This document shows, piece after piece, positions 423 through 24,135 of a stretch of 64,000 nt of DNA. The DNA lies in assembly GCA_030704615.1 (NCBI GenBank), contig CM060733.1:7564001-7628000 (forward strand). The letters run 5' to 3'. The notes below the pieces were generated by a model, which saw only the letters and a program-made list of their open reading frames with translations, did no database searches and was not told where the DNA came from. This DNA comes from Takakia lepidozioides (lineage: Eukaryota; Plantae; Bryophyta). How positions within the stretch are numbered: position 1 is the first letter of the stretch; each line of letters begins with the position of its first letter. The translations under genes were made by a program, and so were the position numbers.

Positions 423-1406
423 ATGTCTCCGCCAAAGAGAAGAATAGATCATAAGATTGAGGTTGTTCCAAGTAGTACTCCTTCTTGTGAAATCCCTTAT
501 CGATTAACACCAAACGAGTTGAAAGAATGTAAGGCTCAAATCGAGGACCTAATATCAAAAAGTTTTATAAGACCAAGTGTATCCCCGTATGGAGCGCCGG
601 TGTTGTTTGTGAAGAAAAAAGATGGAGCAATGCGCATGTGCATTGATTATCGAGCACTCAACCAACAGACAGTGAAGAACAAGTACCCGTTACCACGCAT
701 GGACGATCTATTTGACCAACTGCGAGGAGCAAAATACTTTACGAAGCTTGATCTAATGAGTGGATACAACCAAATTCGAGTCGCTGATAAAGATGTATAT
801 AAGACCGCTTTCCGCACTAGGTATGGACATTTTGAATACATGGTTATGTCATTTGGTCTCACCAATGCCCCAGCCACATTCATGGGCCTCATGAATGATA
901 TCTTTCGCTCATTCTTAGATAGATTTGTGATAGTCTTTTTAGATGATATTATGATCTATAGTAACAACCTTGTCGAGCATAGAAACCACCTCAAACAAGT
1001 ATTACAAGTTCTCCGTGAGAATCAGCTATATGCCAAAGCATCTAAATGTGAATTTGAAAAACAAGAAGTAGATTATCTTGGGCATTGTGTGAGTATGAAG
1101 GGAATTAAGGTAATGAGTGAAAAAATAGAAGCTATTCAGCAGTGGATAGCCCTTGAAGACATTACCCAATTAAAGAGTTTTCTTGGCCTTACCGGATTCT
1201 ACAGACGATTTGTACGGGCATTCTCAAAGATTGCCCAACCATTAACAAATCTTTTGGGCAAAGGAATTAAATGGAAATGGGGTACAGAAGAGGTTAGCAT
1301 TTCAAGCCTTGAAGAATGCGTTGCTTCATGCCCCGATCTTGAAATGGTAGGATCCGACAAGACTAATCAAGCTCTCAGTAGATGTGTCAGGCTCAGCAGT
1401 GGGTGA
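423..1406 (+). pseudogene. Gypsy pol: reverse transcriptase domain
   Basis: Motifs [61 protein letters not shown]; frameshifts into RNase H at ~1300-1380. Confidence 0.95.
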
Positions 1407-2007
1407 GATATTACAACAAGAATGGAAAGACGGATGGCACCCAGTGACATATTTTTCTCGCAAATTGTTACATGCGGAACAAAATTACCATACAACCGAA
1501 CGAGAAGAATTGGCCATCGTTTTGGGTACAAAACATTGGAAGCACTATCTTGGAGACAAAGAGTTCATAGTGGAGATAGACCATAAACCGTTGGTGTACT
1601 TGGAGACACAAAAAGATCTATCGAAGAGACAGATTCGTTGGGTGGAGTGGCGACAACAATTTAATATGAAGATCGTCTATGTAGAGGGAAAACGGCAATT
1701 GGCAGATGCAATGACAAGGATGTCGCGCATGAACACATTGACAGAAATCAACATTCAACCCGATTGGTGGAACAAGATAGCGACGGCTTCTAAAGATGAT
1801 GGGGAGATCGTGGACGCTAAAAAGAAGGGCAAAGTGACAGAAGTTCGAGGGTTGGTATTCAAGGAAGATAAACTTTGGATCCCTGATGAACCTGCATTGA
1901 AGACAAAAGCCTTGTTTGAAGCTCATGATACGGCGATAGCAGGACATGTTCGAGTTGAAAAAATATTCGAACAACTAAAACGAACATTTTATTGGCCGCG
2001 GATGTGA
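1384..2007 (+). pseudogene. Gypsy pol: RNase H and integrase zinc-binding N-terminus
   Basis: Motifs HPVTYFSRKL, EQNYHTTEREELAIV, DHKPL, then AHDTAIAGH and FYWPRM; premature stop at 2005-2007. Confidence 0.92.
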
Positions 2008-2013
2008 GACGAG

Positions 2014-2580
2014 GTGGAGGCGTACGTTCGAAGTTGCATGAGATGTCAACAAAACAAGTCAACAAACCGCAAGCCATCATGTCTTTTACAACCACTACTA
2101 GTACCAAACAGACGTTGGGAACATATGAGCATGGATTTAGTTTGTGAGTTACCTCAAACCTCATCGGGATACGACACTATAGTGGTCTTTGTAGACAAAT
2201 TGAGTAAGATCATACACATCCGTCCCACTAGAAAATTCGTCACTGCACCTAAACTAGCTCGACTATATCTGGAAGCGGTCTATTCTCATCATGGACTATC
2301 TAAAGTTCTCATTACTGACAGGGGTACCCAATTTACTAGCTTGTTTTGGAAAAGCTTATTTGGTCTTTTTAAAATCAAATTAGCTATGTCAACAGCCTAT
2401 CATCCGGAGTCAGATGGACAGACAGAGCGAGCAAATCGTACAATTGAAGACATGTTGCGGGCCTTTACGTTAGAAGAACAAGAAGAGTGGGATTGGTTAT
2501 TACCATTGGTAGAATTTTCATACAATAACTCGGTCAACGCGTCAACGAAAGAAACTCATTTTTTTTTTTATGTATGGTGA
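2014..2580 (+). pseudogene. Gypsy pol: integrase core (rve)
   Basis: CxxC (SCMRCQ), SMDLV, ITDRGTQF and YHPESDGQTERANRTIE carry the D,D35E motifs; frameshift in a T run at ~2560. Confidence 0.93.
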
Positions 2581-2711
2581 ACACCCAAATGTGCCAACAA
2601 CTCTTACGAAGTTTAATTTACCAAAAGATGAGTTATCCAAGGTAGCCACGACTAACGCATTTGTGCAACAAATTCGACGGGGAGTACGTCAAGCTTAAAA
2701 GAAGCTGATGG

Positions 2712-3149
2712 TTGCCCAAAATTGCCAAAAGCAGTATGCAAATGCACGTCGACGGGATGATGAGTTTGCAGTTGGGGATCAAGTGTGGTTGTCTACAACC
2801 CATTTACACAGTAGCATACAAGCTGGAGTTACTACCACATATGAAGATCCACCCGGTGTTTCACGTTTCTCTACTACGTCGTTACGAACCTCGATCATCA
2901 ATATTCAAAGATAATCAAGAACCACAACATTTTCCAGAGTTGATAGACAAAAATAAAGAGTGGGAGGTCGACCGTGTTATGAAAAAACGCACATACAAAC
3001 GAGGGCGACATGAGGTGTTGGAATATTTGGTTTTATGGAAAGGATTTCCATTATATAAAGTTACTTGGGAACCGGTGCAAAATCTCGCAAATGCTCAATT
3101 GACAATTCAAGCTTTTGAAAATTCGAACATCGAGGACGTTGCTTCTTGA
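2712..3149 (+). pseudogene. Gypsy pol C-terminus with chromodomain
   Basis: AYKLELLPHMKIHPVFHVSLL followed by chromodomain EWEVDRVM...EYLVLWKGFPLYKVTWEPVQNL, ending at the PPT. Confidence 0.88.
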
Positions 3150-3162
3150 AAGAGGGGAAGAT

Positions 3163-3571
3163 TGTAACAAGGTAGAATCTAGAAGGTTCTAGATGGAGGA
3201 TGAAAGTTCTCTAGTAAGAAGTTTGACTTAAGGAAGTTTGACTTGAGGCTCTCAAGTCAAACCTCTAAGATATTCATATTATGGAGAGTAGGTCAAATAT
3301 TTGATAAAGTCATATTGTAGAGAATATGTCAAACCTATGAAGGTTGACTTTAACAAATATCTTTGATAAAGTCGTATTGTGGAGAATATGTCGAACCTAT
3401 TAAGGTTGACTTTAGGAAGCTTTGACTTGAGGCTCTCAAGTCAAACCTTTAAAATAATCATATTGTGAAGGGTATATAAACCTACAATGAAAGCCTAGAA
3501 GACATCGAGTTGTTTTGGGAAAAAGTTGAGAAGTACTTCTATTCTAGTTTGTGTAGATCTTGAGTGTTACA
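3163..3571 (+). repeat. 3' LTR (409 bp) of the chromovirus
   Basis: Starts TGTAACA directly after the PPT and ends TGTTACA (7-bp terminal inverted repeat). Has internal duplications and a TATA-like TATATAAA at ~3473. Right flank GGCAT is the candidate TSD. Confidence 0.9.
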
Positions 3572-4435
3572 GGCATCTTGATAAAGAAGAGTTATCTTCA
3601 TCGTGAACGGATGTTATGCGTGTATTACGAGGTCTAATATAAAACTCATCGTGAATGTTATATCTCTCTGTATTATTATTATCTGTTATTGGAATAGCAA
3701 AGTGCATGTTATCCTCGTCATTGTTTTGATGATCAATGTTTGTCCAGATGTTTTGGTTATGGTGGTTTGACAATTCAAATGAACAAGTTTGTAAGTCATC
3801 CCAACAAACATTGGAGTCAGTGTCCTCTTGTACATGAAGTTTATATGTAAAAGAGATTTTATTTGTGATATAGATTCGGCATGTTCAGAATATGCTTCAT
3901 GCCATGTGTTATGAATGCCTATTTATTGTTCTTCTCGTCCTCGAAAATGATGGTATAAAAGAAGTTGTTCTCTTGCTTTATGTTTATTGTAGTGAACAAA
4001 CCTTATTACTTTCATTTTTTTACATTTGACAAATTTATTATTTATAATATTATATGATGAAGAAAATTCAGCTAAGGATAAAGAATCCAATTCCATAGGT
4101 CTGCGTACGTACCTATCTATAATAGAGGGACACATAACGTCAGTGGAATGTGGATCTAATTTTTCTAATGCATTTTGAGGTTTTAGCACAAATATCATAT
4201 TTTGACATGGTGAAGTATTAATAAACTTAAATGAGCGAGAGCTATGATGTAAAGGAAGTGATAAAACTAAGTAGGCTGCAAGTTGGGCAGACATTTGTTG
4301 AGAATTTAAGAAAACATTACCCAACTTTATTATTCGTGTATCAGAATCTACTTTGTCAGCAACACATTTTTGGATGATTGTACGTAATTCAGATGTTATT
4401 GTTTTGTCTAGTTTTGTCATGTAAGATGTACAATG
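3572..4435 (-). mobile_element. Helitron/Helentron Rep-helicase remnant, interrupted by the Gypsy element
   Basis: ORF 3923..4459 reads CTSYMTK...LGNVFLNSQQMSAQLAAYLVLSLPLHHSSRSFKFINT...YVRRP..LDSLSLAEFSSSY...REQLLLYHHFR, matching the Rep-to-Pif1 linker of Helitrons. Decayed coding sequence continues to the LTR edge. Confidence 0.8.
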
Positions 4436-5713
4436 GCAGGGTGTTGTAATCATGTACACGGATATCGAAGAAAATATTCTATCTTACATGTTATTCCTTG
4501 TGAGAAGTCCTTGATGAACACTACTATTGCTACAATGTTTGAGTCCAATTCCGAACATGCAACTGTTCCTTTAGATCAGAAGGAGCTATGGCGAGTGAAG
4601 TGCCATAAGTTATGTGTAGAATGTTTTGAATCTGTTGGGCAACAAAGCTGTCATATGTGTACACATCCACCATGGCCTATAGATTTAAAGCCCTATACAA
4701 GAACTTGGTTGCAATGTACAATAGTTGATAACGTAGTTATCCATTCTATTGAGCAGTTTACTGATGTAGTAAACTTTGCCAAAATAGCACAAAGACAATC
4801 AAAAGATGCAAACTATGTTGTAGCCAAATATAGAATTGGCAGTGGATCTTTCTCTGGGAAAAGTCTGTTGTGAAAATTAGACTTACCTGATGATATTGAA
4901 ATTCATTTAGTTTATAGTGATGTTCCGAACAATTCTAAAGTGAGGATCAAGCCATATTGGTTACATGAAGATACGGTGGATACTTGGGCTGCATACACAA
5001 AATACAACGCAAAGACGACAACCTCAATTGTGGTCCTCAACAGGAAGGGCGTATCGGAGGAAGACCATCTGATTGTGGATTTTGACGATCTCAAGGTAGA
5101 TGACATTTATCTTATCTACATGCGAAATGTGGTGGATACGATGCAAGCCCAGACTATTAAGAGTCTAGCTTATTTGTATTTTCAAACTACACCATACAAG
5201 GGAAGGAGTGGACATGATACTATGAGAGGACCAAGGCCATCCAAAAGCCATGGATATGCAGCAACCATTGCCAGCAAGGGAAATACTGACAAATATTACA
5301 ACAAATCAACATCTGCAGAAGACGAAGTAGCGTTTAGGGATACTGATGATAGTATTGCTTCAAACATTTGGAAAGGAGTTGTAAATAAATTTCCTAGATT
5401 TGTGGCGGACTTATTTGAGGACCAAATATGACCTTTTAGCTATATTAAAATAGGATTGAAAGGGTCGAAAGTACTAGTGCATCAATTCTATATGACAAGG
5501 TCAATTGTAGTGCCTACCCACGTGGACAAATCAGACAAAGACAGTACTATTATCTATTGGACAAAACGAGGGTCACCCACGGAAGAAGATTTTTTTGTAA
5601 ACTAACTGTTCTATAAGTTCGAGACTACAGATGCAGCTACGATATTTATTAGATCCAAATTCTTAGCCTATGGCACACTCACAAGTAAAGATGTAGATGA
5701 AGCAAATTTTTAA
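4433..5713 (+). pseudogene. Stop-interrupted frame: RING-like Cys/His cluster plus putative TET/JBP-type 2OG-Fe(II) dioxygenase domain
   Basis: ORFs 4433..4873, 4940..5431 and the sequence from 5432 share one frame, broken only by stops at 4871, 5429 and ~5603. Motifs: CHKLCVECFESVGQQSCHMC, FYMTRSIVVPTHVDKSD (HxDxxD), TIIYW and IFIRSKFLAYGT. Confidence 0.55.
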
Positions 5714-6372
5714 ATTAGGTATGATGAGTTAGATGAAGAGAAAGTATGATAGTATTTGTGTATATAGAGTTGTATATTATTTGATATTTACATCATTTTA
5801 AAAGATATACTATGTGTTACTACACTGTTACATTATTTTTTGAACATATAATCCTCTTCATTTTTGGCAATGTGACACCCTAAGCCGTGCAAGCAGAATT
5901 CAGTATATATTCCATGTTTTGTACTCTGGAAATGTGAATAGTATACCAGGGGCCATGATCTTTTGTTATAGAGTTCAGTGTGAAGTTCCTGAAAATATCA
6001 CACCCAAAGCATTCTCTTAATCGAAGTTGTACTAATGGGACTAAAAGTGCATGGCTCCTTCCTTCATTGGTACTATTTTCTATCTTGAGGGAGCTTGAGA
6101 AAAGTTTTGATAGCTAGATAGGATGTCTTAACTACAGGACTGGATAGCATTTGTCTTGTTTGTGGGACCTGGACAGGGACTAATCGGTGGCAGTATCTGT
6201 AGGTCACAGAGAACAGGAGCGTGTGTACTTGGGTTACAGTGGCGGTTTGCAATTACAGTAAAGGGCTTATCTACCCCTCAAAACCAAAGTACAATAGCAC
6301 CAGTATTTTTACTATGTACACATGTAAACTATGGATAAATGCCACTAGTTTCTGAACTGATGTATGTGTGCA

Positions 6373-6890
6373 GGGAATGAGACTGCAGAGACAATGGCAT
6401 ACTTTGGAATTATATTGAACTTGGTATTTTACTTGGTACATAGCATCCATGTCAGCTTCCCATATTCATCTACCTTTGTCACAAACTTTATGGGGACTAC
6501 CATCACACCCTTGCTCAGAGCCTTCTCGCCGACCCATATCCGGGACAATATATTAGAAAATAGATATCGTCTTAGGCTGCCCACTGTTTGGCCAATTACA
6601 AACTCTTTTCTTCTCTGCATCTGTTTATTGTTGAAAGGTAGGCAAGCCGCATCCCTGAAAAGATATCGTTGTAGGAAATGATATTGGAATCTTCATTTTT
6701 CTAGGGCTTCATCTTATTGGCACTCTCTGCCAACTTACCTGGCTGTAAGCCTTCGGCTTTTATGTCTACCGATATGAACATGTTTATGGGCAAGTGTCAG
6801 AAGGGAACATCATCACAAATGGCTTTCCTATATGTATCACTCTATACAATTGCATTGGGATTAGGCGGGATCAAACCCTGGACAGTTGAG
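6373..6890 (+). pseudogene. NPF (NRT1/PTR family) transporter pseudogene fragment
   Basis: GNETAETMAYFGIILNLVFYL...VTNFMGT..TPLLRAF, a frameshifted AD-Y-G-Y motif, then GFILLALSA...CQKGTSSQMAFLYVSLYTIALGLGGIKP. These match NPF N-terminal helices. It is truncated and interrupted by a 90-bp insert. Confidence 0.8.
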
Positions 6891-7226
6891 CTCTAGGAAT
6901 AGAAGAGTGATCCCATTTCAATCTTTCTTCATCATCCCAATGTTCACTTCAAATACCCTCCTCTAGGATGTGCACAATGTGGTGATTATGTATGCTTAGT
7001 CCATTGCTTAGTTGACTTTGTTTTCCGAGATTCTCTAGCAGTTTCCGGACATGAAGGGAACGATGAAAGTATATGGGATCGTGTACTTGTATGTGACCAT
7101 TGTTGATTTCCAGTGCGGTTTTCAAGAAAGCCCTTTGTGGCTTTCTGTCGTGGGCTCAAACATTCGAGGACGGGGTTGCACACGCATCTGCATTTTCCGA
7201 ACCAGTTTTTTGTTTTTAATTTACTT

Positions 7227-7245
7227 TATATATATATATATATAT
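7227..7245. repeat. (TA)n microsatellite
   Basis: Direct reading of the sequence. Confidence 0.9.
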
Positions 7246-10200
7246 CTGTTTTATATATTAGATAAAGTAGTATGTATAGTTTTTATTAGTTTATCAATCA
7301 TTGTAATTGATAATATAATTGAATACTTTGAAGCTTTTGCATGAGTTAATAACAAAAGCACAATGAACATAACATAAAATTAGCTCATACTTGTACAAAC
7401 TTTCAAATTAATAGGATTTTGGCATGTTTACAAAATAATTTAAGATTTTCTTAGGCCAATCCCAGTCTTTACACAGTGAAAAGTTAGTTGATCATTTAGA
7501 CCAACGACGGTCTTGACATGGTGTAAACATAGTTCATCACATGTTACATACAATGTAAACCAATAACAGTCTTGACATGGTGTAAGGTCAGTTGACCATT
7601 TTTTCTCCATTGACTTCAACATGATGCAAAGTCTATGCCCTGAAGGGACATAGCCAACAACACTGTTGCCCAACCCTACCCGAAGGACTTGAAACTCCCC
7701 AAATACCCACCCAATAAATTAATTAGCTGACCCCATTTTATAGATAAGTTGGCCACAATGGGTGTCATCCAACATACATTTATGTGGCTTTGAACCCACA
7801 ACCACTTGTAAAAGACAGCTTTGTGCCCTCTTAATCAAATCATTGAAAAGAGCTAGGAAAAAATAACCCAGCCCAAGGCTTTGAAGCGTACAAGGGGATA
7901 CCACACCCTTGACCACAAAACAAGAGTTAGAATCACTGCCAAAAAGCACCAGAGAGCTTAAAAAAAGAAATAGAAAGAGAGAAATATGAGGCCCTCTGAA
8001 ATTGAAGGTAAGCTTTGAAGTTTCTATTATGGATGTTCATGCAGCGTTAGTTGACCTCACTGTCTTCCCCATCAACAAGAGGACTCCCATTCCGCAAGGA
8101 AAGCGATTGTGCCAAAGAATTCTTGAATCAAACATATAGGAACAGAAGAAATCATCATTGCCCCAAGATACATCAAAAGCTTAGTAAAAAATTTCTCTTC
8201 TTTTTTCAGAATATTTGCACACCTCTGCCATCAGAACTACCTAAGCATTTCTCCCCTCCGTCTGAAGTCTGTATAGAGTTTCAACAATACGAGCTTGATG
8301 TTGGGACTGGGACCCTTATAAGCAAAAAAAACATCAATTTATCAAAATCGAATATTCTGTCATAAATTCCCTATTTCTCATGGATGAAATTGCCAAAATT
8401 CTCAAAAACAAATATAGATCTTGGATGAATTTGCCTAATATGGATGATATACATGGATGAAAGTACAGCGGAGGATGATTCTGTCCAAATTTCAGTGGAT
8501 GAGCAGAAAATATGGCTATTTTTTATGCAAAACTCAGTAGCCACTCCTGTTCTTTTCCAAATTTGAAAAAAAAAACACTGGTGCCTGCTGGGTTCTGTGG
8601 CGCAGCAGCCCGACTCGCGCCCACGCCATCCCTGCACACCTCGCCTCCCATTGGCCGGAAGAGGGCAGATCTCCGCCAAGATGCTGACAGGCACACGCTT
8701 GGTCACGTTGACTTGGATTCAGGGACGTATTCTATGCGCAGAATACAGCGCTTGGGTTCAATGCACGGAACAATATTCAGTGCGAGCTTTTCACGGGATA
8801 TAGGGTTCAGTGCGCCCACCATACCCTCATGTTCCGTTGGCGTGCTGGGTTCAGTGTAAGGTGGGGATGCTCTTATGAGTGCTTAGCAAGAGGAGGTGAC
8901 TCGACATATAAGTAGGGAGGAAAGCCCACATGGCATAGAAAGTTGAAGACCTCAATCTTATGGGCTAATGAACAAGAAATTAAACAACTAAAATTGTGCA
9001 TGTTGCTCCGCACTAATACTGACGACCTATAAAAGCAATGTTCAAGTTTTACAAACAGTTCAACACTCCATTTCATTTTGATTGGGGATATATTTAATAC
9101 AAAAATAAAAAATAATGTAAAAACTAAATGCAAGAGTACTTTCGCCCAATTCAAGCAACATAGGCTCCTTGAGCTTTGCTAAGAAAAAAGAGATATTGGA
9201 TCAACCGATTACTTATCCTCCCACATTGATCCGATTATGTTCGTTAAAAGGTGCTTACCTTCCAAACGGAGAGCAGTAGCTCTTCAGTTGCTTCCTTATG
9301 AAGTAGTGATTGTTCAAGGTTGAACATCCATAGTTGGTCCTTCCGAAGGTATGTTGGTTCCTTGTTGCATCTTGGATATGGCCTTGCTTACCTCTTGGTG
9401 TAAGCTCTTAGGCTAGTCAAAAAAAAAATTTAAACAATGTTCAATGGTTACAGATGGCCCAATGGTAAGGCCACCTTATAAGTGGTCGCAGGTTGTCACC
9501 CATTATGGCCAACCCAGCTTTGGCGTATCTGGATCAACTGGCTACTTAATGTGCGCGTACCTACGGACTTTCGTGTCCTTGGAGGACATGGCCCCATTAC
9601 AGCCGTTGAAAAGTGTCCACCCTCCAAACGGAAGGCAATATGATGGAATGACATCATAAGTTGCGTGTGCTTCAACAGTAAGAATCTTCCTTTCAATGGT
9701 TTCAATCTACACCCCGGACCATACATAGCAAGAGTCGTGAGTCAGGAACGGCTGCGACTAGTAAGGTACACTCTAATCAAGAACTTTATATGACAAACAA
9801 TTTCAACAATCCTAGCTCAAATCTTTTTTCAACAACCCTAAACCTTTTTTCTTTGTGGTCCTATACATATTCCAAAGTCACAAACCCCCATGTCATTTTT
9901 TAAGTAAACACATGGCTATAATAAATAAAATCAATGGCCCTACAACCAGTCAAGTCTGCAATCGGTCAAATGAGCTCCTTCATACCACTGTGGAAAAATA
10001 AGAACTAGGCAAGGCAATTTCTACATATAAGGGGGAGCCTTGAAGGCTTTTTCACACATAAGGCAAATTGTTGTCGACTGCAACTATTGCTGCCAGTGGA
10101 AGTTGCCATTATCAAAAGTTTTGAGGCCATACATTCACCCGATCACTTTACTTGTTGCTCTTGTAGCTCACAACAAATTAAAATTTGCATCATAAACATG

Positions 10201-10779
10201 TGTTTTATGCTGAGACCTTTTCATATGCTTTTGTTAACTAAATCTAAAATCTATCAATGTAGGATGCCCAAATGCTATTGTTGTCATTTGCAGATGTTCA
10301 ACTTATTGGTAGCAGCAACAAAAAACACTGACACTCATTTTATACAAGTTTTATCCGCTCCAGCCATTCCATGGCATGTGAACATGCTTTGACGTCGAGC
10401 CGCAAGAAAACATGCATATTCATCATCTCACTAAATCTTCATTTTTTATTTGAAAATTGACTCTTGCCAAAACAAGCGTAACTTATGCATCACTTATGCA
10501 TCACTTGATCTGAACCGCTACAGCCTTCGAGTGGGAAGGTGGACACCTTCATGACATCCAACACATGTGATTTTGAACTAACAACCACTAGTGAAATGGT
10601 ATTATGCCGTGACCATCAGCTATCTATTGGATGTCATCTCATACATTAACTTTATATGAGTTGTGGGAATAAGCTAAACCCTGGTTGGTGCGAACCCTCA
10701 AAAGGCTCTAACAACTACTCTTTGGCAAGGCAAAGTTTCTGGGGAACAGCGTGAGTACATTCTTTTCTCTCTAACTCTC

Positions 10780-11500
10780 CGGCAAGGCAGGGGGGTCTAA
10801 CTTTGAACAATAAACAAATGCAAAGAGGAAATGGAGACAAAAGAGAGATTATCAATGCCCGATGTACAGATGGCTTCAAAGAGAGAGAGAGAACTCCGGC
10901 AAAAGCCGGCGTAACTAAAAGCCACTGCACCTAGGGGGTACTGCCCCCGGTCAGGGGTGGGCTCTATAGGGGGATAAAGTAGTGTCGAGGTACTAAGGAG
11001 AAGAATCTTGTGTAAGACTATTTGACTAGGTGGGTTTGGTTGTTTTCGAGTTTGCGTTTCTTACTAATGATATATGTTAAGGATCTGAAGGCTGGGAGTC
11101 CAAAGACGATATCTAATGTATAGGGCATTCTCATGACAGAGCAATCCTCTTCAAGATCATCAACAACAGAATCCTTGCAAGACCTCTGTTCACCAACTTC
11201 GAAAACACAAGGTTGAGCCGAAAGCCCTAACCCTATTGGGGTCTAATTGCTGGGCAACTCACACACAACAAATTGATGTTTGTGGCCGCAAGGTGAAGTT
11301 AGTTACACTGGCTTTTTGCCGGAGTCTTCTCTCTCTGATATTTATGTGAAGGGCTTTCTAGAGGAAATCTGGAAAGCCCAAGCCAATTGTCTATATCAAG
11401 AAGTCACACTGCTGGAATGAGCCCTCTGTTCCTACTTGTTCCACCCAAACTGGGCGCATGATCTATGACCAAAATGCTATGGCAAACAATGTCACATGAA
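10780..11500 (+). mobile_element. Degenerate 3' fragments of the LINE family seen at 13.2-15.3 kb, split by a segment bounded by inverted repeats
   Basis: 10785-10840 encodes AGGLTLNNKQMQRGNG (cf. AGSLPLNSKQKQRGKG). 11346-11500 encodes VKGFLEEIW followed by the 3' UTR motif AAACTGGGCGC...GGCAAACAA. Confidence 0.6.
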
Positions 11501-12669
11501 TACTCCCCCTCTCTCACTTTGTTAAGGTCTAGGTAACACCATTCAAGAAATGCCTAATCCCGTTATTCTATGGGGAATTTTTGCACAGGAAAATGGAAAA
11601 CAAGTTTCCCTAATCCTAACGTAAAGTATCAACCTATATGGTCAGAAGAGAGGCTGCCCTATATGGTTAGAAGCCCTAGCTGCTCTTTTCATTTAAAAGA
11701 CGAGCCAACAACAGCTGGAGGAGGAGTCACCTTACTCCCTGAACTATGGCTCCAGGCGAGCTACTCACCTAGACTATATATCCCTTGTTTGAGTACCCGG
11801 CTCTGGTAACACCTTCATTTTGGAAATGGGTAAGATAACTAGCACCGCCCCAGCCCCTAGTATAATGTCTTTTCTTTATATTTTGCAACCCATGACTGTC
11901 TCTAAACTGAATATGAACAACAACCACAAGCCTTCACTTTTTTAGAGGGTAGGCATACTCGGACTGTGAAAAAGGGCATAAGGAAGTCTTCATGGTGCAT
12001 CATGCTTGGTGTGGAATGGTGTTGACACTTGCTTGTGATATTCTCAAATACTTGATGGACTGAAGGAAGATGTTAGGATCTAGTCACTAGTGGCAACCTT
12101 GCCATTTGCTGATCCCTTTCACAAGATAAAGCCTATTGCAACCCTTCATGCCTACCATGACATAGGTAGATCACTATGTGGATTTACTTTGACACTGTGA
12201 CCTCTGAGGGACTCGAGTAAGCCCACATGGAGCATTTTGAATTCAAAGAACTGCTTCAAAACAACCAATCCCCTAGCTGCTATGGCTATTCTCATAGCTG
12301 CAATTTTGACTTCTACAAAGATTCCACTAAAAGTATTCAAGTGAGAATCTATGGACATTTCTAATCTACATATGGAAACTAGGAAGAACCTTCTGGTCAA
12401 AGCCTTGGTTGCATATGATATGGCACCCCATGTAAGCAATTGCCAGGTTTGCAGGCATACATGTTCACAAATCTGAATTTTGCAGGACTTTGTGAGGTTT
12501 CTATGTAAAAGCTACTGTCTATATCGAAGTAGCTGGATCATGTCCAGATATATGATGTTGTTAAACACAACAAGACTAGATGCAAATGATCTAGGACTCG
12601 ACAAGTCTTGACATGACTAAATCACACTCGCTAATTTTGTGAAGTCACAACGGGAGTGAGTCCCTCACA

Positions 12670-12770
12670 AAGGTAGTGTCTGTTCCATTTTGTTCCACCA
12701 AAACTGGGCACGGGGCCTATGGCCACAAGTCTACAGCAAACATCGTCTGAGTACATTCTAATTTTTTTCT
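12670..12770 (+). mobile_element. Short 3'-end copy of the same LINE family
   Basis: TTTTGTTCCACCAAAACTGGGCACGGGGCCTATGGCCACAAG...CAAACATCGTCTGAGTACA matches the reverse complement of 13225-13310. A further copy lies at ~15340-15400 on the minus strand. Confidence 0.7.
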
Positions 12771-13221
12771 CTCAATCTTCACATGTGCTTTCCATGGCAC
12801 AAGGCTGTAACAACACATTTGATTAATCTATCAACTTCTGGAAACAGCCTGATTTGTCTTTCTTGTGTCACCCTTGTGTAAAAGGCAATGCAAAAAAAGA
12901 AGCAACTAGAAATTCCTGCAGCCAACCAGTTATCTGACTGGCAACCAATAAAACAGGTCATCTTCAAGAGATAAGCAATCGACTTCTCCAAAGGAACCAT
13001 CGACAACTTTTCCACTCCGTACCATTCTGATTACTGAAATTGTCACAGCTCTCAGCATTGTCTTCAGTCTCTTAACTCAAATAGCGCAAAATGAGGGGTT
13101 GCTATCTTTGGAGAAAACTACACAAGAAACTTGATTATAAACTGTACACTATCCTCACTGTCTTGCCCAGCAACCGGGCACATGGGTTCCCTTCATCTGG
13201 ACTGAGTTACAGGTAGAGAGA

Positions 13222-15311
13222 TTGTACTCATAAGACGTTGTTTGCCGTAGCCTTGTGGCCATTGACCCCGCGCCCAGTTTGAGCGGGAACAAAAGGGACA
13301 GAACCTACCTCTGTCAGGGGCTGACGTTGGTAGTAAGACTTACCTTTCATATAAAGAATTAATCCGGGTTTTCTAGATATCCTCTAGAAATCCCTTCACA
13401 CAAGCATCAATAGGCCTCAGGAGGGCCTGGGCTTTTGGCTCAGCCTTGAGACTTTCAAAGTTGGTAAACAGGGGTACAGGCACAATTCCCTTGATAGAGT
13501 TGAAGAGAGCGTCTCTTTGGTGAGAGAACCCCGGACAGTGTATCAGAAAATGAATACTGTCTTCAGATTGCCCACACAATGGGCAATTGCACTCTCCCTT
13601 TCCTCTCTGCTTCTGTTTGCTGTTCAAAGGTAGGCTTCCTGCCCTGAGTTTAAATTTCAGTCTAGTGCCGAGAGTGGGTAGACCCTTGAGGTCATCCAAG
13701 ATGTCCTCCCCCATGTCACTGACTGGAAACAAGTTCAGGGAGGTTTTCTGCCTACCTTCATTTTCATCAGACAATCTCATGGCAACAGACATGGCATCGG
13801 ACACTACAGCCTCTAAATCAGATTTATCCAGCAGGGTCAAGACTTGCGGATCCAGGTCCAGGACCTTGAGAATCTCTTCTACTCTCTTCTGCCAGGACTT
13901 AAGCCTGTTTGACAGGGCAGTCCTGTTTCCAAGATATAGAGTCGATTAACTTAGGATATCTGGTGTTGGGCATATGTTGCAGCTGACCCCGCCATCTGAC
14001 CTTGAATTCATCTCGTCGGGAGCTTAAGGACGGAATGCCAAACTCACCCCGAACAGCCAAATTGGCTGTTTTGGAGAATGCTGACATACACTCCTTAAGC
14101 ACCCCCACTTGAATGGATTCTAGAGACTTAGCCTGGTTGGAGTTATCAACCCATATAGCAGATCCGTACTCCAAGGCAGGTCTAATAACGCGGCAAAGCA
14201 TGGTTTTCTTAACCTCAGAGTTGACCCCTCTGCAGTGGAAAAATTTAGTGAGCCCCAGAGCTTTGCCCTTGCCAGATTGAACAACTTTCCGGATATGTGC
14301 AACCCAATTACAATCGGAGGAAAATTCAACGCTTAGGTAAGTGTAGGAAGGGAGGACCGGGATCTCTTGGCTACCCCACTGCCACTTAAGATCACTTCCT
14401 CCCTCTCCTCTGTCGTTGAATGCTACCACTGCACATTTGCTGACATTAGCCTCTAGCCCCCAAAGATCAAAGTATCTCTTCGCGCAATCAATCAACTCCT
14501 GGAGATTGGTCGGAGTCTCCCCTATGCCTGCGAAGTCATCCGCAAACATAAGGGCTGGTATGGTGGTATCACCCACCCTTAACCCAAATCCCTCACTTTC
14601 CACATCCTCGAGGAGTTGATTGATAAAAACATTGAAGAGCAGAGGGGAGAGAGTACATCCTTGAGCTACACCTTGGTCTATGTCAAAGAAGTTGGACTTC
14701 TGTCCGTTAACAGTGACACAGCTTTTGGTGTGAGCATACAAGTTGTGGACAACTCTCCACATCTTTCCCTTGATCCCACAAGACCAGAGGCGGAACCATA
14801 GGCCATCTCTCCACACTGTGTCATAAGCCTTTTTGACATCCAGGAAAAAAACATAAGTGGGTTTCCCTTCTTTTTTCCTTCCCTGGATAATCTGGCTTAG
14901 AGTGAAGATATGATCCACACAGCCCCTGTTTCGCCGAAAGCCAGCTTGGCCTTCGTGGAAACAACCTCTAGACTCCAGATCAACCTCGAGACGAGTACTT
15001 ATAACTCTGCAGAATGTCTTGCCAACAGCATTGAGGAGCGTGATGCCACGGTAGTTCCCCGGTTCTTCTCTGTCACCCTTCTTGTATAGATTGACAATGA
15101 CCCCCTGTCGCCAGCGAAAGGGGATCATTTCAGTCTTCCAGATAAGGTTAAAGAGGAGAACTAGGGCCTCTATCATGGGATCGCCACCGTGCTTGATAAG
15201 CTCGTTGACAATACCATCAGGTCCACCAGCTTTATATCCATTTAAATGTTCAATTGCTTCCACAATCTCAGAAGAACTAATGGGAGCGTTGTAAGCCATT
15301 GAAATATACTC
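13222..15311 (-). mobile_element. 5'-truncated non-LTR retrotransposon (LINE; RTE-X/L2-like) with RT and C-terminal CCHC finger
   Basis: ORF 13899..15299 has KAGGPDGI, NYRGITLL, QAGFR, FLDVKKAYD, GVAQGCTLSPLLF and MFADD. The frameshifted continuation 13373..13840 has CPLCGQSEDSIHFLIHCP. A 12-bp direct repeat CAGGTAGAGAGA at 13210-13221 and 15312-15323 is the TSD. Confidence 0.93.
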
Positions 15312-16963
15312 CAGGTAGAGAGAGAGGGAGATAATGCATCATTAAGACAACATTTTACGTGGCCATAGACCCCGTGCCGAGTTTGGGCGAAACAAGAGGG
15401 GAGGGAGGGAGAGAGAGAGATATGGGAGGAAGATTTAAGAGAGGTATAAAAACGCTTCTCACCTTAGCAGAATTATTTGCAGCATGCACCAGTCTGCTCC
15501 TGCACTTCATATACGATCTCTGCCCTCAATCCACGATGTTCAGCCACTGCATCTCCTGTCTTCCAACTGCCCTCACAACGCCCACTAGTAAGATATGCTG
15601 TACTATTGAGGTGGACTAATGAGGCCTCTTGGTGCCATCAATCAATAACATAACCAAAATTTTATCTCGGTCGTGGACATGAGAGCCCTGCAACACACTG
15701 CAATTTGACATACTGGATAATATGCCACCTGTGCACTATAGCCAGCCATCACATACCCTGTGTGCCATGTCCTCTTCATCAACAATTCCATGTCAAAAAA
15801 ATTGCATTGCTTCAGCAAAGTTGCTCCGAAGTACACTTGGTGAGCACCTCGGCGTGAGTGCACTTGCCTTGCAATTGCCATAACAAAGAATCAGGTGTGC
15901 CTGGATTGGAGTTAATCCAACAACCTCAACAGCCAGTAGCATCAGCCTTCCTTGTTCCAACAGACTCCAGGAGAATATAGGGGTTGCCACTCCTAACGCT
16001 GAAATCTGCAGGGGTGGCTCGGAATAAATCATGCAGGAACTCCCTTTGATCTGTGTAAATTTTGCATAATCCTTGAAAGCAAGGGCACTAATGATATGAC
16101 TGGCAACCCCAAACATACTGCAAAGCGGTCCTGTAGCCATCCCTCACACCTGTTGTAAAACTGGAATTAAGTGTGCCAGAGCTTGGACTTCACTGTAGGA
16201 ATGGTTTATTTGGCACCAGAACTCACAAAGTCAACTTGTGCTGACCACAATGTTGCGACAACAGCTTGGCATCCTTCTGTTTCTGTTTTTCGACCTGCCT
16301 TCTTGCAATCAGAGATTCATCTACCTGGACCCCATAATGTTCACTCCCTTTCAACATAATCTCTCCTCCTCCTCTTTTGCCTTAAGAGTGACTTTTGTCT
16401 CTCAGTAGTGAGATTCCCAGACTAATGTGGCAACATGTGCACAAGTTTGCTCAGATGTTCCAAAATTAGTATACACTCATGCCTTTTTACAGCCCTTGCA
16501 GTTTTATGGCATCTGCCAGCAAATGCCAAAACCATATTTCTAAACTCACCCTGACACATGATCTCTGTCTCTCTCTCTCTGTCTCTGATAGAAATATTCT
16601 TATTCTTCCCCGTAATGCACTGCGAATGGCAAACTTCACATCTGTATGCAATGAAACGATCTTAAAATCTTCTGACACACTACTGCTGGAATTGTTGGCA
16701 TGCACCTGCCAATGTCTTTATTGCAATACGCTTACATGAACATCAGTATGTCAAACTCATATTCACTCAAACTGCTTTATGAAATGCTTGCCATGAATAG
16801 TTCGACCCTTGAACACTTCATGCCAAGATGTAAACGTCCAGGAAATGGCCATAATTCCCCTTAAACTGAAAACAAGCATGTTTATGATCCAAGGCACCAC
16901 ACAGACCAATTCAACCTTTTGTCTAAATCTAGTAGAGATGTTTAACAAAACGAAAGAATTAGG

Positions 16964-17302
16964 TTATGAGACCTGTGAAATTGGCCTCTTCCCCAGTCGT
17001 TTAATTTCACGTTCCATGCGTCCCGTCAACATGAGTGCAAACATCTTGAAATCACAGGCAAAAGACCAGAAGGGGTGTCCGAAGGTGGCCGGGGTGTTGC
17101 CTTCAATGAAGAAATGGCTGTACCATGCAAGCCCGTAGCCAAAGAGGGGAGCGAAGAAGAGCAACCACCACTTAATCAGAAGAGCGGCCAAAAAGAACAA
17201 TGTTGCACTCCCTGTTGCACAGAAGTGCCAACGCCTCGTCGCAGCCTTCGAATGCTGGTTGACATAGAACGGCCAGAATTCCTCAAAGCTTCTGAAATGC
17301 AT
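16964..17302 (-). CDS. DUF962 / Mpo1-like small membrane protein (112 aa from ATG 17302)
   Basis: FRSFEEFWPFYVNQHSK..TRRWHF, GYGLAWYSHFFIEGNTPATFGHPFWS...DFKMF; intact single coding exon. The ORF-track start at 17308 is a TTG. Confidence 0.9.
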   Translation of the reverse strand: MHFRSFEEFWPFYVNQHSKAATRRWHFCATGSATLFFLAALLIKWWLLFFAPLFGYGLAWYSHFFIEGNTPATFGHPFWSFACDFKMFALMLTGRMEREIKRLGKRPISQVS

Positions 17303-18581
17303 CTTCAATAATCGTGCCAGGGACTCAAACCTGTGAAAAACTTATTCTATTCTTAAGTTGAGAATCTTTCAAAACCTGTGTCTGACGGTGTGTGAGGAGC
17401 AAGAGGACAATACCAGAGAGGACGTCTTCAGGAAAGAGCAGATGACACTACCTCCTTCGCGTTTGCAAGTTTCTCTAGAGGACTGATTATTGAAGACGAG
17501 CTGCATGAATGATTCTGCTTGCGTTCTCGTGAAGCTGGCATACCTCTTCTCGAACTTGACCTTTGCATGAGAATTCTCGGGAACGGGAAAGACAAATATG
17601 ACACACAATATGCTCGGCTATGAAAACACGTATATCTTGAGACACCTATTTACAGAGCCAGAGAGTTTACTATACATCGATAGATGAAAAAATATTGCAC
17701 AAAGGTCGGAATCAAATAGAAAACAAGAAATTTACAACACGCAGGAAACAGGGGCACGAAACTGTTGATAGACACATAGTGCGGTACCACAATTCACGAC
17801 AGAGAGAGAGAGAGGCTTGTACTCGTGTGCACGCAAGCATAGGTGCGCGCGGAGCCTCGGAGAAAGAGATACGGCCATCCAGATACATACGAATACAGAT
17901 ACTCTACATTATTCGTGTATGCGGCAGAAATTAGATTACATATAAAATTCCGTAATTTTGATTTTTGTCCCTCCTCTGTAAAGGGCCTGAAGTGTGTGAT
18001 CTGTTCGCTCCCAGGTTTCGTCTTCTTTTTTCCTGTGAAGGGAAACACCGTGAGAGGAGAATAAACCTCTTTCACAGTAACCTCGCCGTGAAGGGCTTTC
18101 GCATGGGACACTGCCCAAGGGAAGGGGGAGAAGAACATATTAAGATACCACACCCGTCAAGGTAGCAGGATTTGACCCCAGAATCGTCTGGGAGGCACTG
18201 AGTGCAACACTATCCAACTCCACCTGAGGTACCTGTTGCTGGATTTCGAGAGAAAGAAAAAAGAAATGGGACCATAGGCACCAGTGATGGATTTATTGGC
18301 TTATGTTTTTCAGAAGAAGGGAGAAAGCCCACAAAGATGGAATTCGACCCCAGAATCTCCACATGGTTATTACAGCATTGATATCACTAACTATTCTGGG
18401 TTATCATAATTATTTTTGTTCTTTATCAGCCGAAAGTTTAAATGATAGAAAGCAAACTAGAATACCTAGTTTTAATGAACTGAATTATTAGTCTGAATAA
18501 AGGTGGTGTGCAGGGCGCCGATTGGCCAGCGGCGTACGGTAGTAAGTACCTGCCAAGTACCGATCTGGTACACATAAAAGA

Positions 18582-19945
18582 GCCATGTTCTCGAACGCCT
18601 GGCATGCATCCTTGATGCTCCCACATTTTGCATACACATCAGCCAAGGTAGTCTCCAGAACAATATTTGGGGCAATTGCAGCTTTGATGATGTCAGTGTG
18701 GACCTCTTTGCCCTTTTCAAGGAATCCTAGGTTGGCACATGCATTAAGAAGGCAAGTGAATGTGACCCTGTCAGGTGTCACCCCTTCCATTTGCCATAGA
18801 CCTCGAAAGCCTCCCACCCACACCCATGCTGGGCATATCCTGTGATCATCGCACTCCAAGAGACCACATATTGTTTAAACATATTGTCAAACACTTCACC
18901 CGCATCCTTCGGGCTCCCACATTTGGCATATGTGTCGACAAGTGTATTCTCTAAATTTACATATGATACAATCCAGCTTTGATGACCTATTTCCCTCTGT
19001 CCAGGGCTCCCAGACTGGCACACCAATTGAGAATGCAAATGAAGGTGACCCTGTTGGGGGTCACCCCTTCCCATCACATTTCCTCATAGATCTTTAAAGC
19101 CTCGCTACCACACCCATTGTCAGCATACCCTCGCTCCATGACACCACATCTTGTTGAGGCATCCGACAATTCCATGGTTGCATGAGCCATGTTCAACTTC
19201 CTGGGTTCAAGGCACTGTCGTTTCAAACACTTGACATGCATCTTTTATGCCCGCATTTTGCATACATGTCAACAAGGGTATCCTCTAAGTTCACATGTGA
19301 CTCCATTCCAGCTTTAATGATGTCAGCATGGACCTCCTTCCCCTTTTCCAGGGCTCATAGGTGGGCACACGCATTGAGAATGCAAAGGAATGTTACCCTG
19401 CTGGGCGTCACCCCTTCCCATTGCAGCTGTTCGTTGATCTTTAAAGCCTCTCTAATAAACCCGTGCTTGTATATCCTGCTATCATTATTGTCCACGTAAT
19501 GTATCTTTTTCGCGCATGGTAGCAAACATTTGGCGTGCATCCAACATGCTCCTGCACTTGGCATACATGTTGACAAGGGTGTTGAGTAGAGAAATTTCTG
19601 GCTCAAATCCACTCTGAATGATGTGGCGTGCACCTCTTTTCCCTCTGCTAGGCCCTTCTTGTTGATGCACTCCTGTAAGAGACAGAGATAAGTACTGGCG
19701 TCTATGCGAATGCCTCCTTGGTTCAAAGTGTGCAGAGCCTTCAGTCGTCCTATCTTACATAGTGTTCTCACATCCCAACAAGTGCCGAAAGGGTTCTTGT
19801 TGGCTACCAATCTTGGCCCCCTGTCGAAAGCAGTTGCAATGCTTTAGGTGCTACCCCTGCTCCCAGTCTGATGTCCAGCATACATATGTCTGATTCAACC
19901 CTGCAATCCTGCATAATTGAACAGTCTTATTCCAAACCTGTACAC
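18582..19945 (-). pseudogene. Truncated, frameshifted PLS-class PPR pseudogene, tandem paralog of the neighbouring DYW gene
   Basis: Fragments in shifting frames ([39 protein letters not shown]) are collinear with the N-terminal part of 20817..22748; no E/DYW domain follows. Confidence 0.88.
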
Positions 19946-20816
19946 GATATCACAACTTGTATCTCAAAGTTCAAAGAAAGATCTTGGCATAGGAAGTCAT
20001 CATGCCATCTTCTTCAACCAAACTGTTTCTGCAAGTATGGGCGTAAGACAAATTTCAGCCTGGATTGCTTTACTTGCACACAATTGGGAGACCCAAGAGA
20101 ATGCACATGTGTACCTTTGTTCAGTATCCCTGGAGGCTGGAGAGATGTCACAGCCATGATTTGCAAGGGTCCCAGGCCCGGCATTGCACAGGTGGATGCC
20201 CATCTCCACAGACTGGCCTGTAAATCTGCTGCATGGGGTGTTGCCTACCACCCGTACAGGGCCTTAGGTTTGGCTTCACCCTGCAGGCCCAGACACTCTC
20301 GCTACTCCGAGAGAGGGAGGAGATTGTAAAGTCACAAGAAGAATGCAATTGTCCCCATAGAACACCTCTTTAAAAAAGAGGGCAAGCCCATTTAACTTAC
20401 ACTTTTGCAGAATTGATCATTCCCTGGACATTAAAGATAATTAACTAAATCCATCCATTGGGTGAAGTATCTTACTATGATTCTACTTCATACATATACA
20501 ATATTCGCAGAATATATACTTTGTTGTAAGCTTTGAGTGTTCTGTTGATAGAATGACTGAGGGAGGGATCAGCAGCACACTTTGGGATACTTTTCTTTCT
20601 TCTGAGAACAGTATGGTCAATGGCGTAGATAGCTGCTGTACTCTCCAGCTGCTGTTCCAGAATCATAAATCCTCACCATGGGCAGCTCACAGAAAGTGCA
20701 AAGCCATATGTCGAACACGTTTATTCCTTGTTTACAAAAATCATGACAAAGTATGCATGGGATTTTTTGCCCTCATGTTTGGACCAACACACTTCCTTGA
20801 ATTCCTGTTGCTTGTT

Positions 20817-22748
20817 TCACCAGTAATCCCCACAAGAACAAACCCCGTCTTGAAAGTGGTGAAAGCGATTGGCATCCCGTACTATAATTGCTCGCCCAAC
20901 AATCTTGGAGATGAATTTTGTTGCAGTATGGCAGTCACCACACACCCGAAGGTTCTTGATGATGCGGATAGGCGCCCTGGGAGGCACGCTGATGAGCCCA
21001 AAAGCAATGGCCAACCTCTCACTGTGGTAGCAAAGAGAAACTTCCTTTTGGGCCTCCTCCATATCATGTAATACAAAACGCGTGTCAGGCACATACCCAG
21101 CCTCCTTCATTTGACCAGACAATTTCTCCAGCTCAGCATGGATTTCCTGAATTTGTGGATGCAACTTGTCTTCTGCAATGAAGGTATGCAGCTGGTTGTT
21201 CACCTCAATGGAGCTGCGCCCTGCCTCCTTCCTGACGCCTCTGTCCTCCATCAGTTTTCTTAGCTTTGCTTTATCATCCCACCTGCCAGCTGCAGCATAG
21301 ATATTTGACAGTAGCACATATGGTGCAAGGTCCTGTGGATCCCACTTGAGAACGCAATTTGCTGCATGTTCTGCTAGCTTCACATACCCATGAAGGCTAC
21401 AGGCACCCAGCAAGGCCCCCCATACCGAAGCATCTGGTTCGATTGGCATTTTGTTAATGAATTCCTCTGCCTCCTCCACTCGCCCTGCACGACCAAGAAG
21501 GTCTACTATGCAGCCAAAATGCTCCATTGTAGGAGTCAGGCCATGATCTCGGCTCATTGAATGGAAGTAGTGACAGCCTTCATCCACAAGACCCACATGG
21601 CTACATGCAGAGAGAAGAGATGTAAAAGTGATAGTGTTTGGCTTCAAGGCGTCCTGTTGCATTTGTTCAAATAGTTGCACGGCATCCCTACCACACCCAT
21701 GCTGAGAAAATCCTGCGATCAGGGAGTTCCATGAAACCACATCTCGTTTGGCCATTCTGCCAAACACTTGACGTGCATCCGTCATGGTACCGCATTTAGC
21801 ATACATGTTAACTAGGGCATTCTCCAAATTAATGTATGACATAATTCCAGCTTTCAAAATCATTGCATGGACCTCCTTCCCCTTCTCCAGGGCTCCTAGG
21901 CTGGCACATGCATTGAGTACACTGATGAATGTAACCCTGTTGGGCTTCACCCCTTCCACTTGCATTTGCTCATACATCTTGAGAGCCTCCCTACCATATA
22001 CATGCTGAGCATATCCTGTGATCATTGCACTCCATGAGATTACATCTCGTTTAGCCATATTATCAAACACCTGATGCGCATCCTTCATGCTACCACATTT
22101 GGCATACATGTCAACAATTGTATTCTCCAAAATGATATCCAACCCAATTCCAGCTGTTTTAATGTCAGTATGAACCTCTTTGCCCTTTTCCAGGGCTCCT
22201 AGGCTAGCACACGCATTGAGAACGCAAGTGAATGTGACCCTGTCAGGTGTCACCCCTTTCCTTTGCATCTGCTCATATATTTTCAAAGCCTCCTTAGCAT
22301 GCCCACTTTTGGCATATCCTGCCATCATCATACTCCACGTAAACATATTTCGATCAGGCATTTTGTCAAATACGTGGCGTGCATCCACCACGCTCCCGCA
22401 CTTAGCATACATGTTGACAAGAGTGTTGAATAGAAAGATGTCTGGCTTGCAATTGCATTGGATAATATGGGCATGCACCTGCCTTCCCTCTGCTAGGCCT
22501 TTCATGCGGATGCACTCCTGCAATAGAGATATGTAAGTACTGGCATCTGCCCGATTGCCTCCTTGGTTCAAAATATTCAGTGCTTCTTTCAGTCGGCCTG
22601 CCTTACACAGTGTCCGCACATCCCCACAAGTGCCAGAAGAGTTCTGATTTACTCCTCTTGTTCCACTTTCAAAAGCAGTGCTAATGGTGCGGCCCCTGCT
22701 GCCAGTCTGATGTCCAACAAACAACTGTGCCTGATTCAACCCTGACAT
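20817..22748 (-). CDS. PLS-class PPR protein with E/E+/DYW deaminase domain (organellar C-to-U RNA editing factor), 643 aa from first ATG
   Basis: Intronless ORF with P-L-S triplets, E domain (VWGALLGAC...[14 protein letters not shown]), [20 protein letters not shown] and terminal CSCGDYW. The ORF-track start at 22787 is GTG; the first in-frame ATG is at 22748. Confidence 0.95.
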
Positions 22749-23984
22749 CCTGCATGACTCGGAACTCTTAGTTTGAAACGTTTGCACATTATGTTACACA
22801 ATATATCGCAAAACCCCTAGATATGTTGAAGAAAGATATTTCCACGAGGACAGGCATCTGGTTTTATAGATAGAAATAGTAGGATCCATTCTCAAACTAC
22901 TCCAAGTAGATGACTGCAGCAGTTCTGTAACCCTGTTAATCTATTTGTGTTGGAATCCCCAAAATTATCATCATTAACAATACCCTTTGTATTCTTGACC
23001 TGGAGCTCGATGATGTACATTCAAACTAGAATCATCACCAGATTGTGCTCGACCTTCTATAAGGGCAGCTAGCTCTGCTTTCACCCAAGGAGGCTTCAAG
23101 AAACCATCAATCCAAAGGACCTCCATCGTGCTGTTCTGTCTAAAGTCTGATCTTGGACCTTTCTGTTAAAAACCACAAGTGGATAGCTCAGCTGCCACAG
23201 CTTCAACCATATAGTGCATAAACCAGGCTAAAACAGCCAAAGCTCTATGAACATCTCAAAAAACAGGCAACAACTCCAAACAAACCAACTTCTATGTGGG
23301 TAACCAATCACAGATCAAACAAAAAGAATACCTAACATGGAGCGTGTAATAGTGCAAAACTTTGGCTTTACTATGGCCTTGCGACTAGACAATACTGAGG
23401 CGCCATAGCTGGTGCAAAATGGTTCGCTGAGCTTCAATCCTGCAGATAATGGAACAACCTTGATATACACTACTATCAATATCCATAGTGACCATTTCTC
23501 AATGTCTGCATGTCGTAACAGTATCCACATTTTCCAGTGGAATTCTGCACAGAAATACCATGCACCGTGCACGAGAACTCACGAACATGCACGCTATCCA
23601 AGCATACAATGCAATTTATCATACATCAGCACGCAGCATTTACTTTAACCTACATTCTGCTGTAAGCTGAAATTCATGGGATTACCACAGCACTGAAAGG
23701 GGAACTGTCAGACAGTAGCTGTACCGGAAATGATGCCAACTCCTCCACTCCATCCTTCAGCTGGCACGAACAAACTTTGGTCACAGTTCAATTGCCCCTT
23801 TACCGCCAACGAGTGTGGAGTTTACAGAGGGATGAAAGAGAAGTCGAGAGTCCTGTCCTATAGTGGTTCACTGGACCCCCCAACATTTTGTTCAAGCAGA
23901 TTGAGAAACAATTGCACTCTTTGGTAAATGCCTGAGCATTTCATATCACCTACTTCTACAGGCACAGTTTTTTGCTTGATGCAC

Positions 23985-24135
23985 AGAGAAACAAAGAACC
24001 CAAGAAAGAAATGAAATGAAATGATGCTTTATAACATCCACGGAAAGCTCAAAGAGCTTGTAGGACGAGAAAGCATTTAACGCCTGTTGCAGATATGCTG
24101 CCAAGTCTTTCTGATCCTTGTACTGGAAACCCTCT
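23985..24135 (-). mobile_element. 3' tail fragment of the (CATTT)n LINE family, minus strand
   Basis: GAAATGAAATGAAATGATGCTTTATAACATCCACGGAAAGCTCAAAGAGCTT is the reverse complement of the tail module. Confidence 0.75.

Follow-up and report, generated by a model that had tools for sequence, protein, structure and literature searches.

Does a moss Helitron carry a gene for a DNA-base-modifying dioxygenase? The question is raised by a broken reading frame at positions 4433-5713 in DNA of Takakia lepidozioides (assembly GCA_030704615.1, contig CM060733.1, positions 7,564,001-7,628,000 of the forward strand). This whole stretch of 64,000 nucleotides is referred to here as the window, and all window coordinates are relative to it. 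The original prediction read the frame as a TET/JBP-like dioxygenase gene borne as cargo by an abutting Helitron. Our analyses make it probable that the window from 4433 to ~5732 holds a dead, 5'-truncated copy of a TET/JBP gene resembling CMD1 of Chlamydomonas reinhardtii, and that its contact with Helitron sequence is incidental.

The broken frame and its intact relatives

Translation of the plus strand confirmed that 4433-5713 forms a single frame of 427 codons, with three internal stops and one end stop. By an arithmetic estimate, 427 random codons at the ~35% G+C of this region would be expected to hold ~30 stops. The internal stops separate four pieces, A to D, which were queried individually in all database and family searches; an X-joined read-through was used only for one local alignment. 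A phmmer search of 1.84 billion representative proteins with the 185-amino-acid piece B returned seven relatives, with expectation values (E) of 6.9e-13 to 4.4e-5. The frame was compared with P0018, an intact full-length relative of 556 amino acids on contig L001, which belongs to a cluster from the relatives search and whose reading frame is open. Residues 46-550 of P0018 are matched in sequential order by the four window pieces, which were also aligned in order with other relatives. The frame is thus not a chance occurrence, and its colinearity with an intact protein identifies 4433-5713 as a pseudogene of a real family. This family is small and found in non-seed land-plant-like genomes, where the predicted gene is intronless and ~550 codons long. 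The window holds no second copy of the dioxygenase frame elsewhere within its 64 kb.

Piece A (4433-4870) encodes an N-terminal Cys/His-rich module that matches P0018 residues 46-159 in BLASTP (E 1e-5), and it ends at a TGA (4871-4873) opposite a Gln of P0018. Piece B (4874-5428) covers the central region, with the motifs Y-F-Q-T-T-P-Y-K-G-R-S-G, S-H-G-Y and D-S-I-A-S-N-I-W, and runs to a second in-frame TGA (5429-5431). The first half of the catalytic core lies in piece C (5432-5602), which entered the core alignment A4 and its profile match to CMD1 (PDB 7cy4). Here a His codon (CAC, 5519-5521) and an Asp codon (5525-5527) form an HxD motif within H-V-D-K-S-D, and E-E (5582-5587) stands where the family has G-G. 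Beyond a TAA (5603-5605) that lies opposite a Gln in the L005 copy, piece D (5606-5710) provides the second half of the core, Y-K-F-E ... I-F-I-R-S-K-F-L-A-Y-G-T, and matches the C-termini of L013, L005 and P0007 in tblastn (E 3e-8 to 8e-7). Fifty residues past the HxD His, a Tyr (TAT, 5669-5671) occupies the position of the distal iron-binding His; as anticipated for the paralogs, relatives read H-G-T at this position. These two codons, and the Cys/His string of the first piece, C-H-x2-C-x2-C-x8-C-x2-C, are all located where the original prediction had put them.

The conserved motifs of the family comprise Y-Y-E-T-A-P-Y-x-G-x-S-G-K-D, S-H-G-Y and G-D-x-I-A-S-N-I-W; V-H-x-x-H-x-S-K-N-S-x-I-x-P-H-x-D-x-x-D, A-S-I-I-T-W-F and G-G-x-F-G; and K-F-D, H-G-T-L and (R/K)-x-G-x-A-L-V-N-K. 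In the window copy, the main frame closes at a TAA (5711-5713), which overlaps a run of five T residues (T5, 5707-5711) with a probable one-base frameshift. In the +1 frame, plus-strand positions 5709-5729 read F-K-L-G-M-M-S, followed by a TAG (5730-5732). Since F-K-L-G (5709-5720) keeps the family spacing and matches the F-K-L-G / Y-R-I-G strand that bears a Lys or Arg after the distal His, the end stop probably stems from a one-base change in the T5 run. With the X-joined +1 read-through, the match to L013 grew from 25 columns (32.3 bits) to 49 (34.7 bits), a gain that the main frame did not give; F-K-L-G by itself has an E of ~0.5. On this slender evidence, homology probably continues past 5710 in the +1 frame. 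A large C-terminal deletion that left Y-D-E-L-D-E-E as a residual tail (E 0.32) was also considered and set aside in favor of the T5 frameshift. At the other end, the open reading frames (ORFs) of relatives begin 20-45 codons 5' of a G-C motif in piece A, and these codons are absent from the window copy. Helitron sequence starts two codons upstream of this motif, and the 5' end of the window copy is therefore missing.

With no 5' end or promoter side, three to four in-frame stops, a probable frameshift, Tyr in place of the distal His and the Gly-Gly lost, the window copy is unable to make an enzyme. No contig from two RNA-labelled runs of the same species covers 4433-5713, which is no proof of silence. 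DNA contigs of the probable source sample include a few more copies, 87-96% identical, which differ mainly by transitions.

In full, the pattern of piece A is G-C-x-H-x-H ... P-C ... C-H-K-x-C-x2-C-x8-C-x2-C. One Cys/His pattern is common to the window, P0018, L021 and L002, so the N-terminal module is real, and the motif makes zinc binding probable. It had been described as RING-like, a description that was not supported. We took a RING finger to be C-x2-C, 9-39 residues, C-x(1-3)-H-x(2-3)-C-x2-C, 4-48 residues and C-x2-C (C3HC4 or C3H2C3), together with a model match. In all four sequences the Cys and His are adjacent (C-H) and an upstream C-x2-C pair is lacking, so that the spacing is not that of C3HC4. 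Pfam returned no RING or zinc-finger match for the module, and the piece from L005 gave zinc-ribbon and FYVE matches below threshold only (E ~0.02).

Comparison with CMD1

To place the family, core profiles were compared with 177,635 PDB sequences. Profile A4, which includes window rows, found CMD1 (7cy4) at an E of 7e-5, and its only other match was a nanobody (E 1.6). A four-row core profile without any window sequence, A6, found CMD1 at 1.4e-3, and P0018 as a single sequence found it at 0.19, both in the same register as A4. Single-sequence PDB searches with piece B and with P0007 returned nothing. Other broad searches were likewise unproductive: Pfam, PHROGs and NCBIfam gave nothing relevant for the window pieces and relatives, an ESM Atlas feature search with piece B gave low scores only, a metagenome locus scan with alignment A3 matched patterns and confirmed no relative, and a tblastn search of phages with P0007 found no match.

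The iron in CMD1 is held by His345, Asp347 and His397, and Asp350 reads the N4 of cytosine (PMC7854593). The corresponding HxD...H triad is present in P0018, P0007, L005 and L013; the window copy retains H-V-D and fails to complete the triad, the distal His being the Tyr at 5669-5671. The Asp three residues after the HxD Asp, aligned with CMD1 Asp350, is kept in all copies including that of the window (5534-5536). CMD1 Trp358 contacts vitamin C, stands where the Arg side chain that binds 2-oxoglutarate would lie and blocks the 2-oxoglutarate C5-carboxylate; it shares the vitamin-C pocket with Arg244, His249, Thr337 and Thr399, next to the hydrophobic residues Val342, Ile356 and Phe371 (PMC7854593). 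The family is identical to CMD1 (PDB 7cy4-7cy8) at H345/D347/H397, D350, W358, F371, T399 and I356, with T337 replaced by Ser and V342 by Ile, and the Trp that is invariant in the family, encoded at 5558-5560 in the window, falls at the Trp358 position. HxDxxD, the W-F strand, G-G-x-F and V-H-G-T are common to both, and the CMD1 G368-G369 columns correspond to the family G-G.

We call the family CMD1-like TET/JBP because the iron ligands, the cytosine-reading Asp and residues of the vitamin-C pocket align with CMD1. The predicted TET/JBP-like character is thereby supported, CMD1 being the sole meaningful PDB match of the core profile with the HxD and distal His in register, and these alignments support CMD1 as the closest characterised relative of the putative enzymes. 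Additionally, CMD1 is likewise a multi-copy gene among mobile elements.

The likeness is not complete. No counterparts of CMD1 Arg244, Phe245 and His249 were located in the family, where the Arg244/His249 region is unalignable, and no counterpart of the family's N-terminal Cys/His module or central region was found in CMD1. The hosts also differ, CMD1 being from a chlorophyte and the family from land-plant-like genomes. In TET enzymes the strand that follows the distal His bears a basic residue (TET2 Arg1896, CMD1 Arg410; PMC7854593). In the family an Arg or Lys stands 16 residues after the distal His (Y-R-I-G / F-K-L-G), outside the hidden Markov model alignment to CMD1, and the window copy has it in the +1 frame alone. 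A basic residue of this kind belongs to the superfamily signature, HxD ... H plus a basic residue, which the family may share in full with animal TET1-3 and Naegleria NgTET1, the 2-oxoglutarate-dependent oxidases of 5-methylcytosine (5mC) (signature per PMC7854593). In contrast to CMD1, these enzymes had no direct match in the PDB profile searches, and at the position of CMD1 Trp358 the family carries a Trp. As in the family, a Cys-rich region precedes the core of animal TETs.

By analogy with CMD1, intact members would flip a (methyl)cytosine into the active site, where the Asp of HxDxxD would read the flipped base and the 5-methyl group would be modified at the iron held by His-Asp-His. Because co-substrate pocket residues of CMD1 are kept (Trp358, Phe371, Thr399, Ile356, and Thr337 as Ser), we infer that ascorbate, rather than 2-oxoglutarate, may be the co-substrate of intact members and that their product may be a base like 5-glyceryl-methylcytosine (5gmC) rather than 5-hydroxymethylcytosine (5hmC).

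Helitron contact and other possible carriers

Directly upstream of the frame, tblastn delimits a minus-strand Rep-Hel fragment of ~0.6 kb (3851-4438), an internal piece from the stretch between Rep and the PIF1 helicase. The minus-strand ORF 3923-4459 has 14 homologs (E down to 9.5e-59), of which P0032, in L012, is flanked by Helitron_like_N and PIF1 genes and P0029, in L011, is located upstream of PIF1. These contexts contradict the DDE_1 assignment given to the same ORF by an ESM Atlas feature search (score 0.93); we rejected that assignment, which is a caution for the use of feature search on transposon fragments. L012 contains a fuller Helitron of a related genome (4902-13240), with ORFs showing a faint OTU match, Helitron_like_N and PIF1, and beyond this Helitron lie an Exo_endo_phos_2 ORF and a Ty1/copia element.

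The fragment and the dioxygenase frame meet head-to-head at ~4434-4439, in agreement with the divergent fusion to truncated Rep-Hel that had been placed at ~4435. No Rep or PIF1 match was found by tblastn anywhere in the 64-kb window. Helitron termini were not found in the window either, in a search that was not exhaustive, and the helicase part could lie beyond the neighbouring Ty3/gypsy retrotransposon, outside the window. In a contig from the same genome, the match reaches 4434 and is followed by sequence that encodes the Helitron motif D-P-Y-A-A-A-T. Since this contig continues with Rep-Hel coding past 4434, ordinary Helitron copies run through the junction. The repeated linkage to Rep-Hel that would be expected of a cargo gene did not emerge: the gene is absent from four Helitron loci of relatives (L011, L012, L025-27 and L028, with flanks of up to 10 kb per side), and no Helitron piece occurs in 22 gene-bearing family loci (151 kb, ~8 distinct places). 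No flanking ORF is common between lineages; the gene alone is conserved. Because the fragment is without Rep and PIF1, same-genome copies pass the junction and linkage is not repeated, we regard the Helitron contact as incidental. It is best read as a junction at which two truncated sequences meet in repeat-rich DNA, next to a Ty3/gypsy element.

The copy could instead be a remnant of another, unrecognised gene-carrying DNA transposon or of a CACTA element, an explanation that we consider less likely. CMD1 itself is located in the transposon DNA-1_cRei, which has no recognisable transposase, and most other Chlamydomonas TET/JBP genes are found in two Helitron2 families, Helitron2-2/2-3_cRei (bioRxiv 10.1101/2022.06.16.496473). 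Consistent with a mobile carrier, the present family is multi-copy, mostly decayed and in repeat-rich DNA, and L005 and L013 share a duplicated 2.6 kb unit that contains nothing but the gene. CACTA-type transposase pieces (Transposase_21, DUF4218) also occur near the gene in two places: at L005 3768-5895 on the minus strand, 3 kb upstream of the gene, and at L008 3110-3874, where in L008-L010 they directly adjoin the truncated gene. However, the ends of the L005/L013 unit showed neither terminal inverted repeats nor target-site duplications, and the lineages have no flanking ORF in common. The CACTA pieces differ in position and orientation and are absent from L013 and the remaining loci, and no transposase adjoins the window copy. 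Proximity to CACTA pieces in transposon-rich DNA could be chance.

In the scenario of the original prediction, a Helitron carried the gene head-to-head with Rep-Hel as an anti-silencing gene, and the present fusion arose when both 5' ends were lost in an internal deletion. Several points speak for it, as the neighbour is truly Helitron Rep-Hel sequence, both genes are cut at one sharp junction near 4434-4439, and Helitrons carry TET/JBP genes both in Chlamydomonas, where they hold most of them, and in fungi. Nonetheless, we consider it very unlikely: the window has neither Rep, helicase nor a visible Helitron end, at least one same-genome Helitron copy continues Rep-Hel coding past 4434, and the four Helitron loci without the gene and 22 family loci without a Helitron piece argue against a lasting association. 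The cargo claim was therefore not borne out.

A number of observations weigh against our preferred reading, a dead CMD1-like copy in incidental contact with a Helitron. The same junction would result if a Helitron that held the gene and Rep-Hel head-to-head had undergone just one internal deletion. The CMD1 match spans only ~65 residues, and a central-region profile had no PDB match. Pfam Tet_JBP (PF12851) gave no match at E up to 10 with the window pieces, P0001-P0007, P0018 or the P0018 core; either the family is too divergent for that model or it may fall outside it. AlphaFold2, run twice with shallow alignments, returned mean predicted local distance difference test (pLDDT) scores of 38.7 and 33.8 and did not show a double-stranded beta-helix. 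Most family copies seen are decayed, and comparison of the intact L001 copy with its frameshifted sibling L024 gave 13 non-synonymous and 2 synonymous changes (omega, their rate ratio, ~1.6 from few sites), so that an active family member is not demonstrated here. On the other hand, catalytic residues are kept long-term at 30-50% identity, which implies past constraint.

That the family is unrelated to TET/JBP, with its H-x-D ... H-G-T pattern and weak CMD1 match due to chance or convergence, would accord with the missing Tet_JBP match, the lack of a confident structure model, the short CMD1 alignment and the failure of P0007 alone to find CMD1, but it is the least plausible explanation, since E improved from 0.19 to 1.4e-3 and 7e-5 in constant register as members entered the profile, all three iron ligands coincide with those of CMD1, as do five more of its residues with defined functions, and CMD1 is the sole non-antibody match among the PDB sequences.

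Published precedents and flanking sequence

TET/JBP genes inside Helitrons are an already published idea, for Chlamydomonas and for fungi. Work by Iyer (2014) is reportedly also concerned with transposon-borne TET/JBP genes. Like the present family, the transposon-borne TET/JBP genes of fungi and Chlamydomonas are multi-copy, often decayed and in repeat-rich DNA, and the window copy touches a Helitron fragment; unlike them, the present family has no carrier shown, no repeated linkage to a Helitron or transposase and no termini. In fungi, eleven DNA-transposon lineages carry TET/JBP genes, including KDZ, EnSpm and Helitron (Kojima 2025, PMC12730594).

A literature search gave no paper about land-plant TET/JBP genes, although the phrase form "TET/JBP" was unmatched by that search. 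Land plants are the textbook case of 5mC removal by DNA glycosylases, and they are said to lack TET/JBP enzymes. A CMD1-like family in a non-seed plant, if true, would widen the range of this chemistry from green algae to land plants, and the presence of 5gmC or 5hmC in a land plant would become a testable question. We offer as a speculation, and an improbable one, that a working CMD1-type family, which uses ascorbate to modify 5mC and has its own zinc module, persists in some non-seed land plants, that it spreads with mobile elements or as a small selfish unit and counters methylation silencing, and that land-plant DNA would hold a 5gmC-like base of which the window copy is a fossil trace. 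The window locus itself adds little, as the copy is dead and the Helitron link, which was the potential new point, fails.

Insertions were seen in the gene region of other family loci: one of 1.7 kb in L013 (7815-9503), relative to L005, and one of ~0.7 kb in L022 (~3577-4314), likewise present in L023.

On the other side of the Helitron fragment lies the pol region of a Ty3/gypsy chromovirus (423-3149, plus strand), composed of several ORFs with matches to RVT_1, RT_RNaseH, Integrase_H2C2, rve, SH3_Tf2-1 and Chromo and interrupted by stops or frame changes. Next to it, 3200-3600 is a repeat of very high copy number that itself contains direct and inverted repeats; its summed contig depth is ~6,000-25,000, and that of unique contigs is ~50. 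At 3571-3572 a large number of contigs part ways, and this is therefore probably the end of a retrotransposon long terminal repeat. Just downstream of the dioxygenase copy, exons of a probable NPF/POT (PTR2) transporter gene occupy 6364-6896 on the plus strand and continue onward; within them, ORF 6717-6896 matches PF00854 with an E of 1.4e-5, just below the family cut-off.

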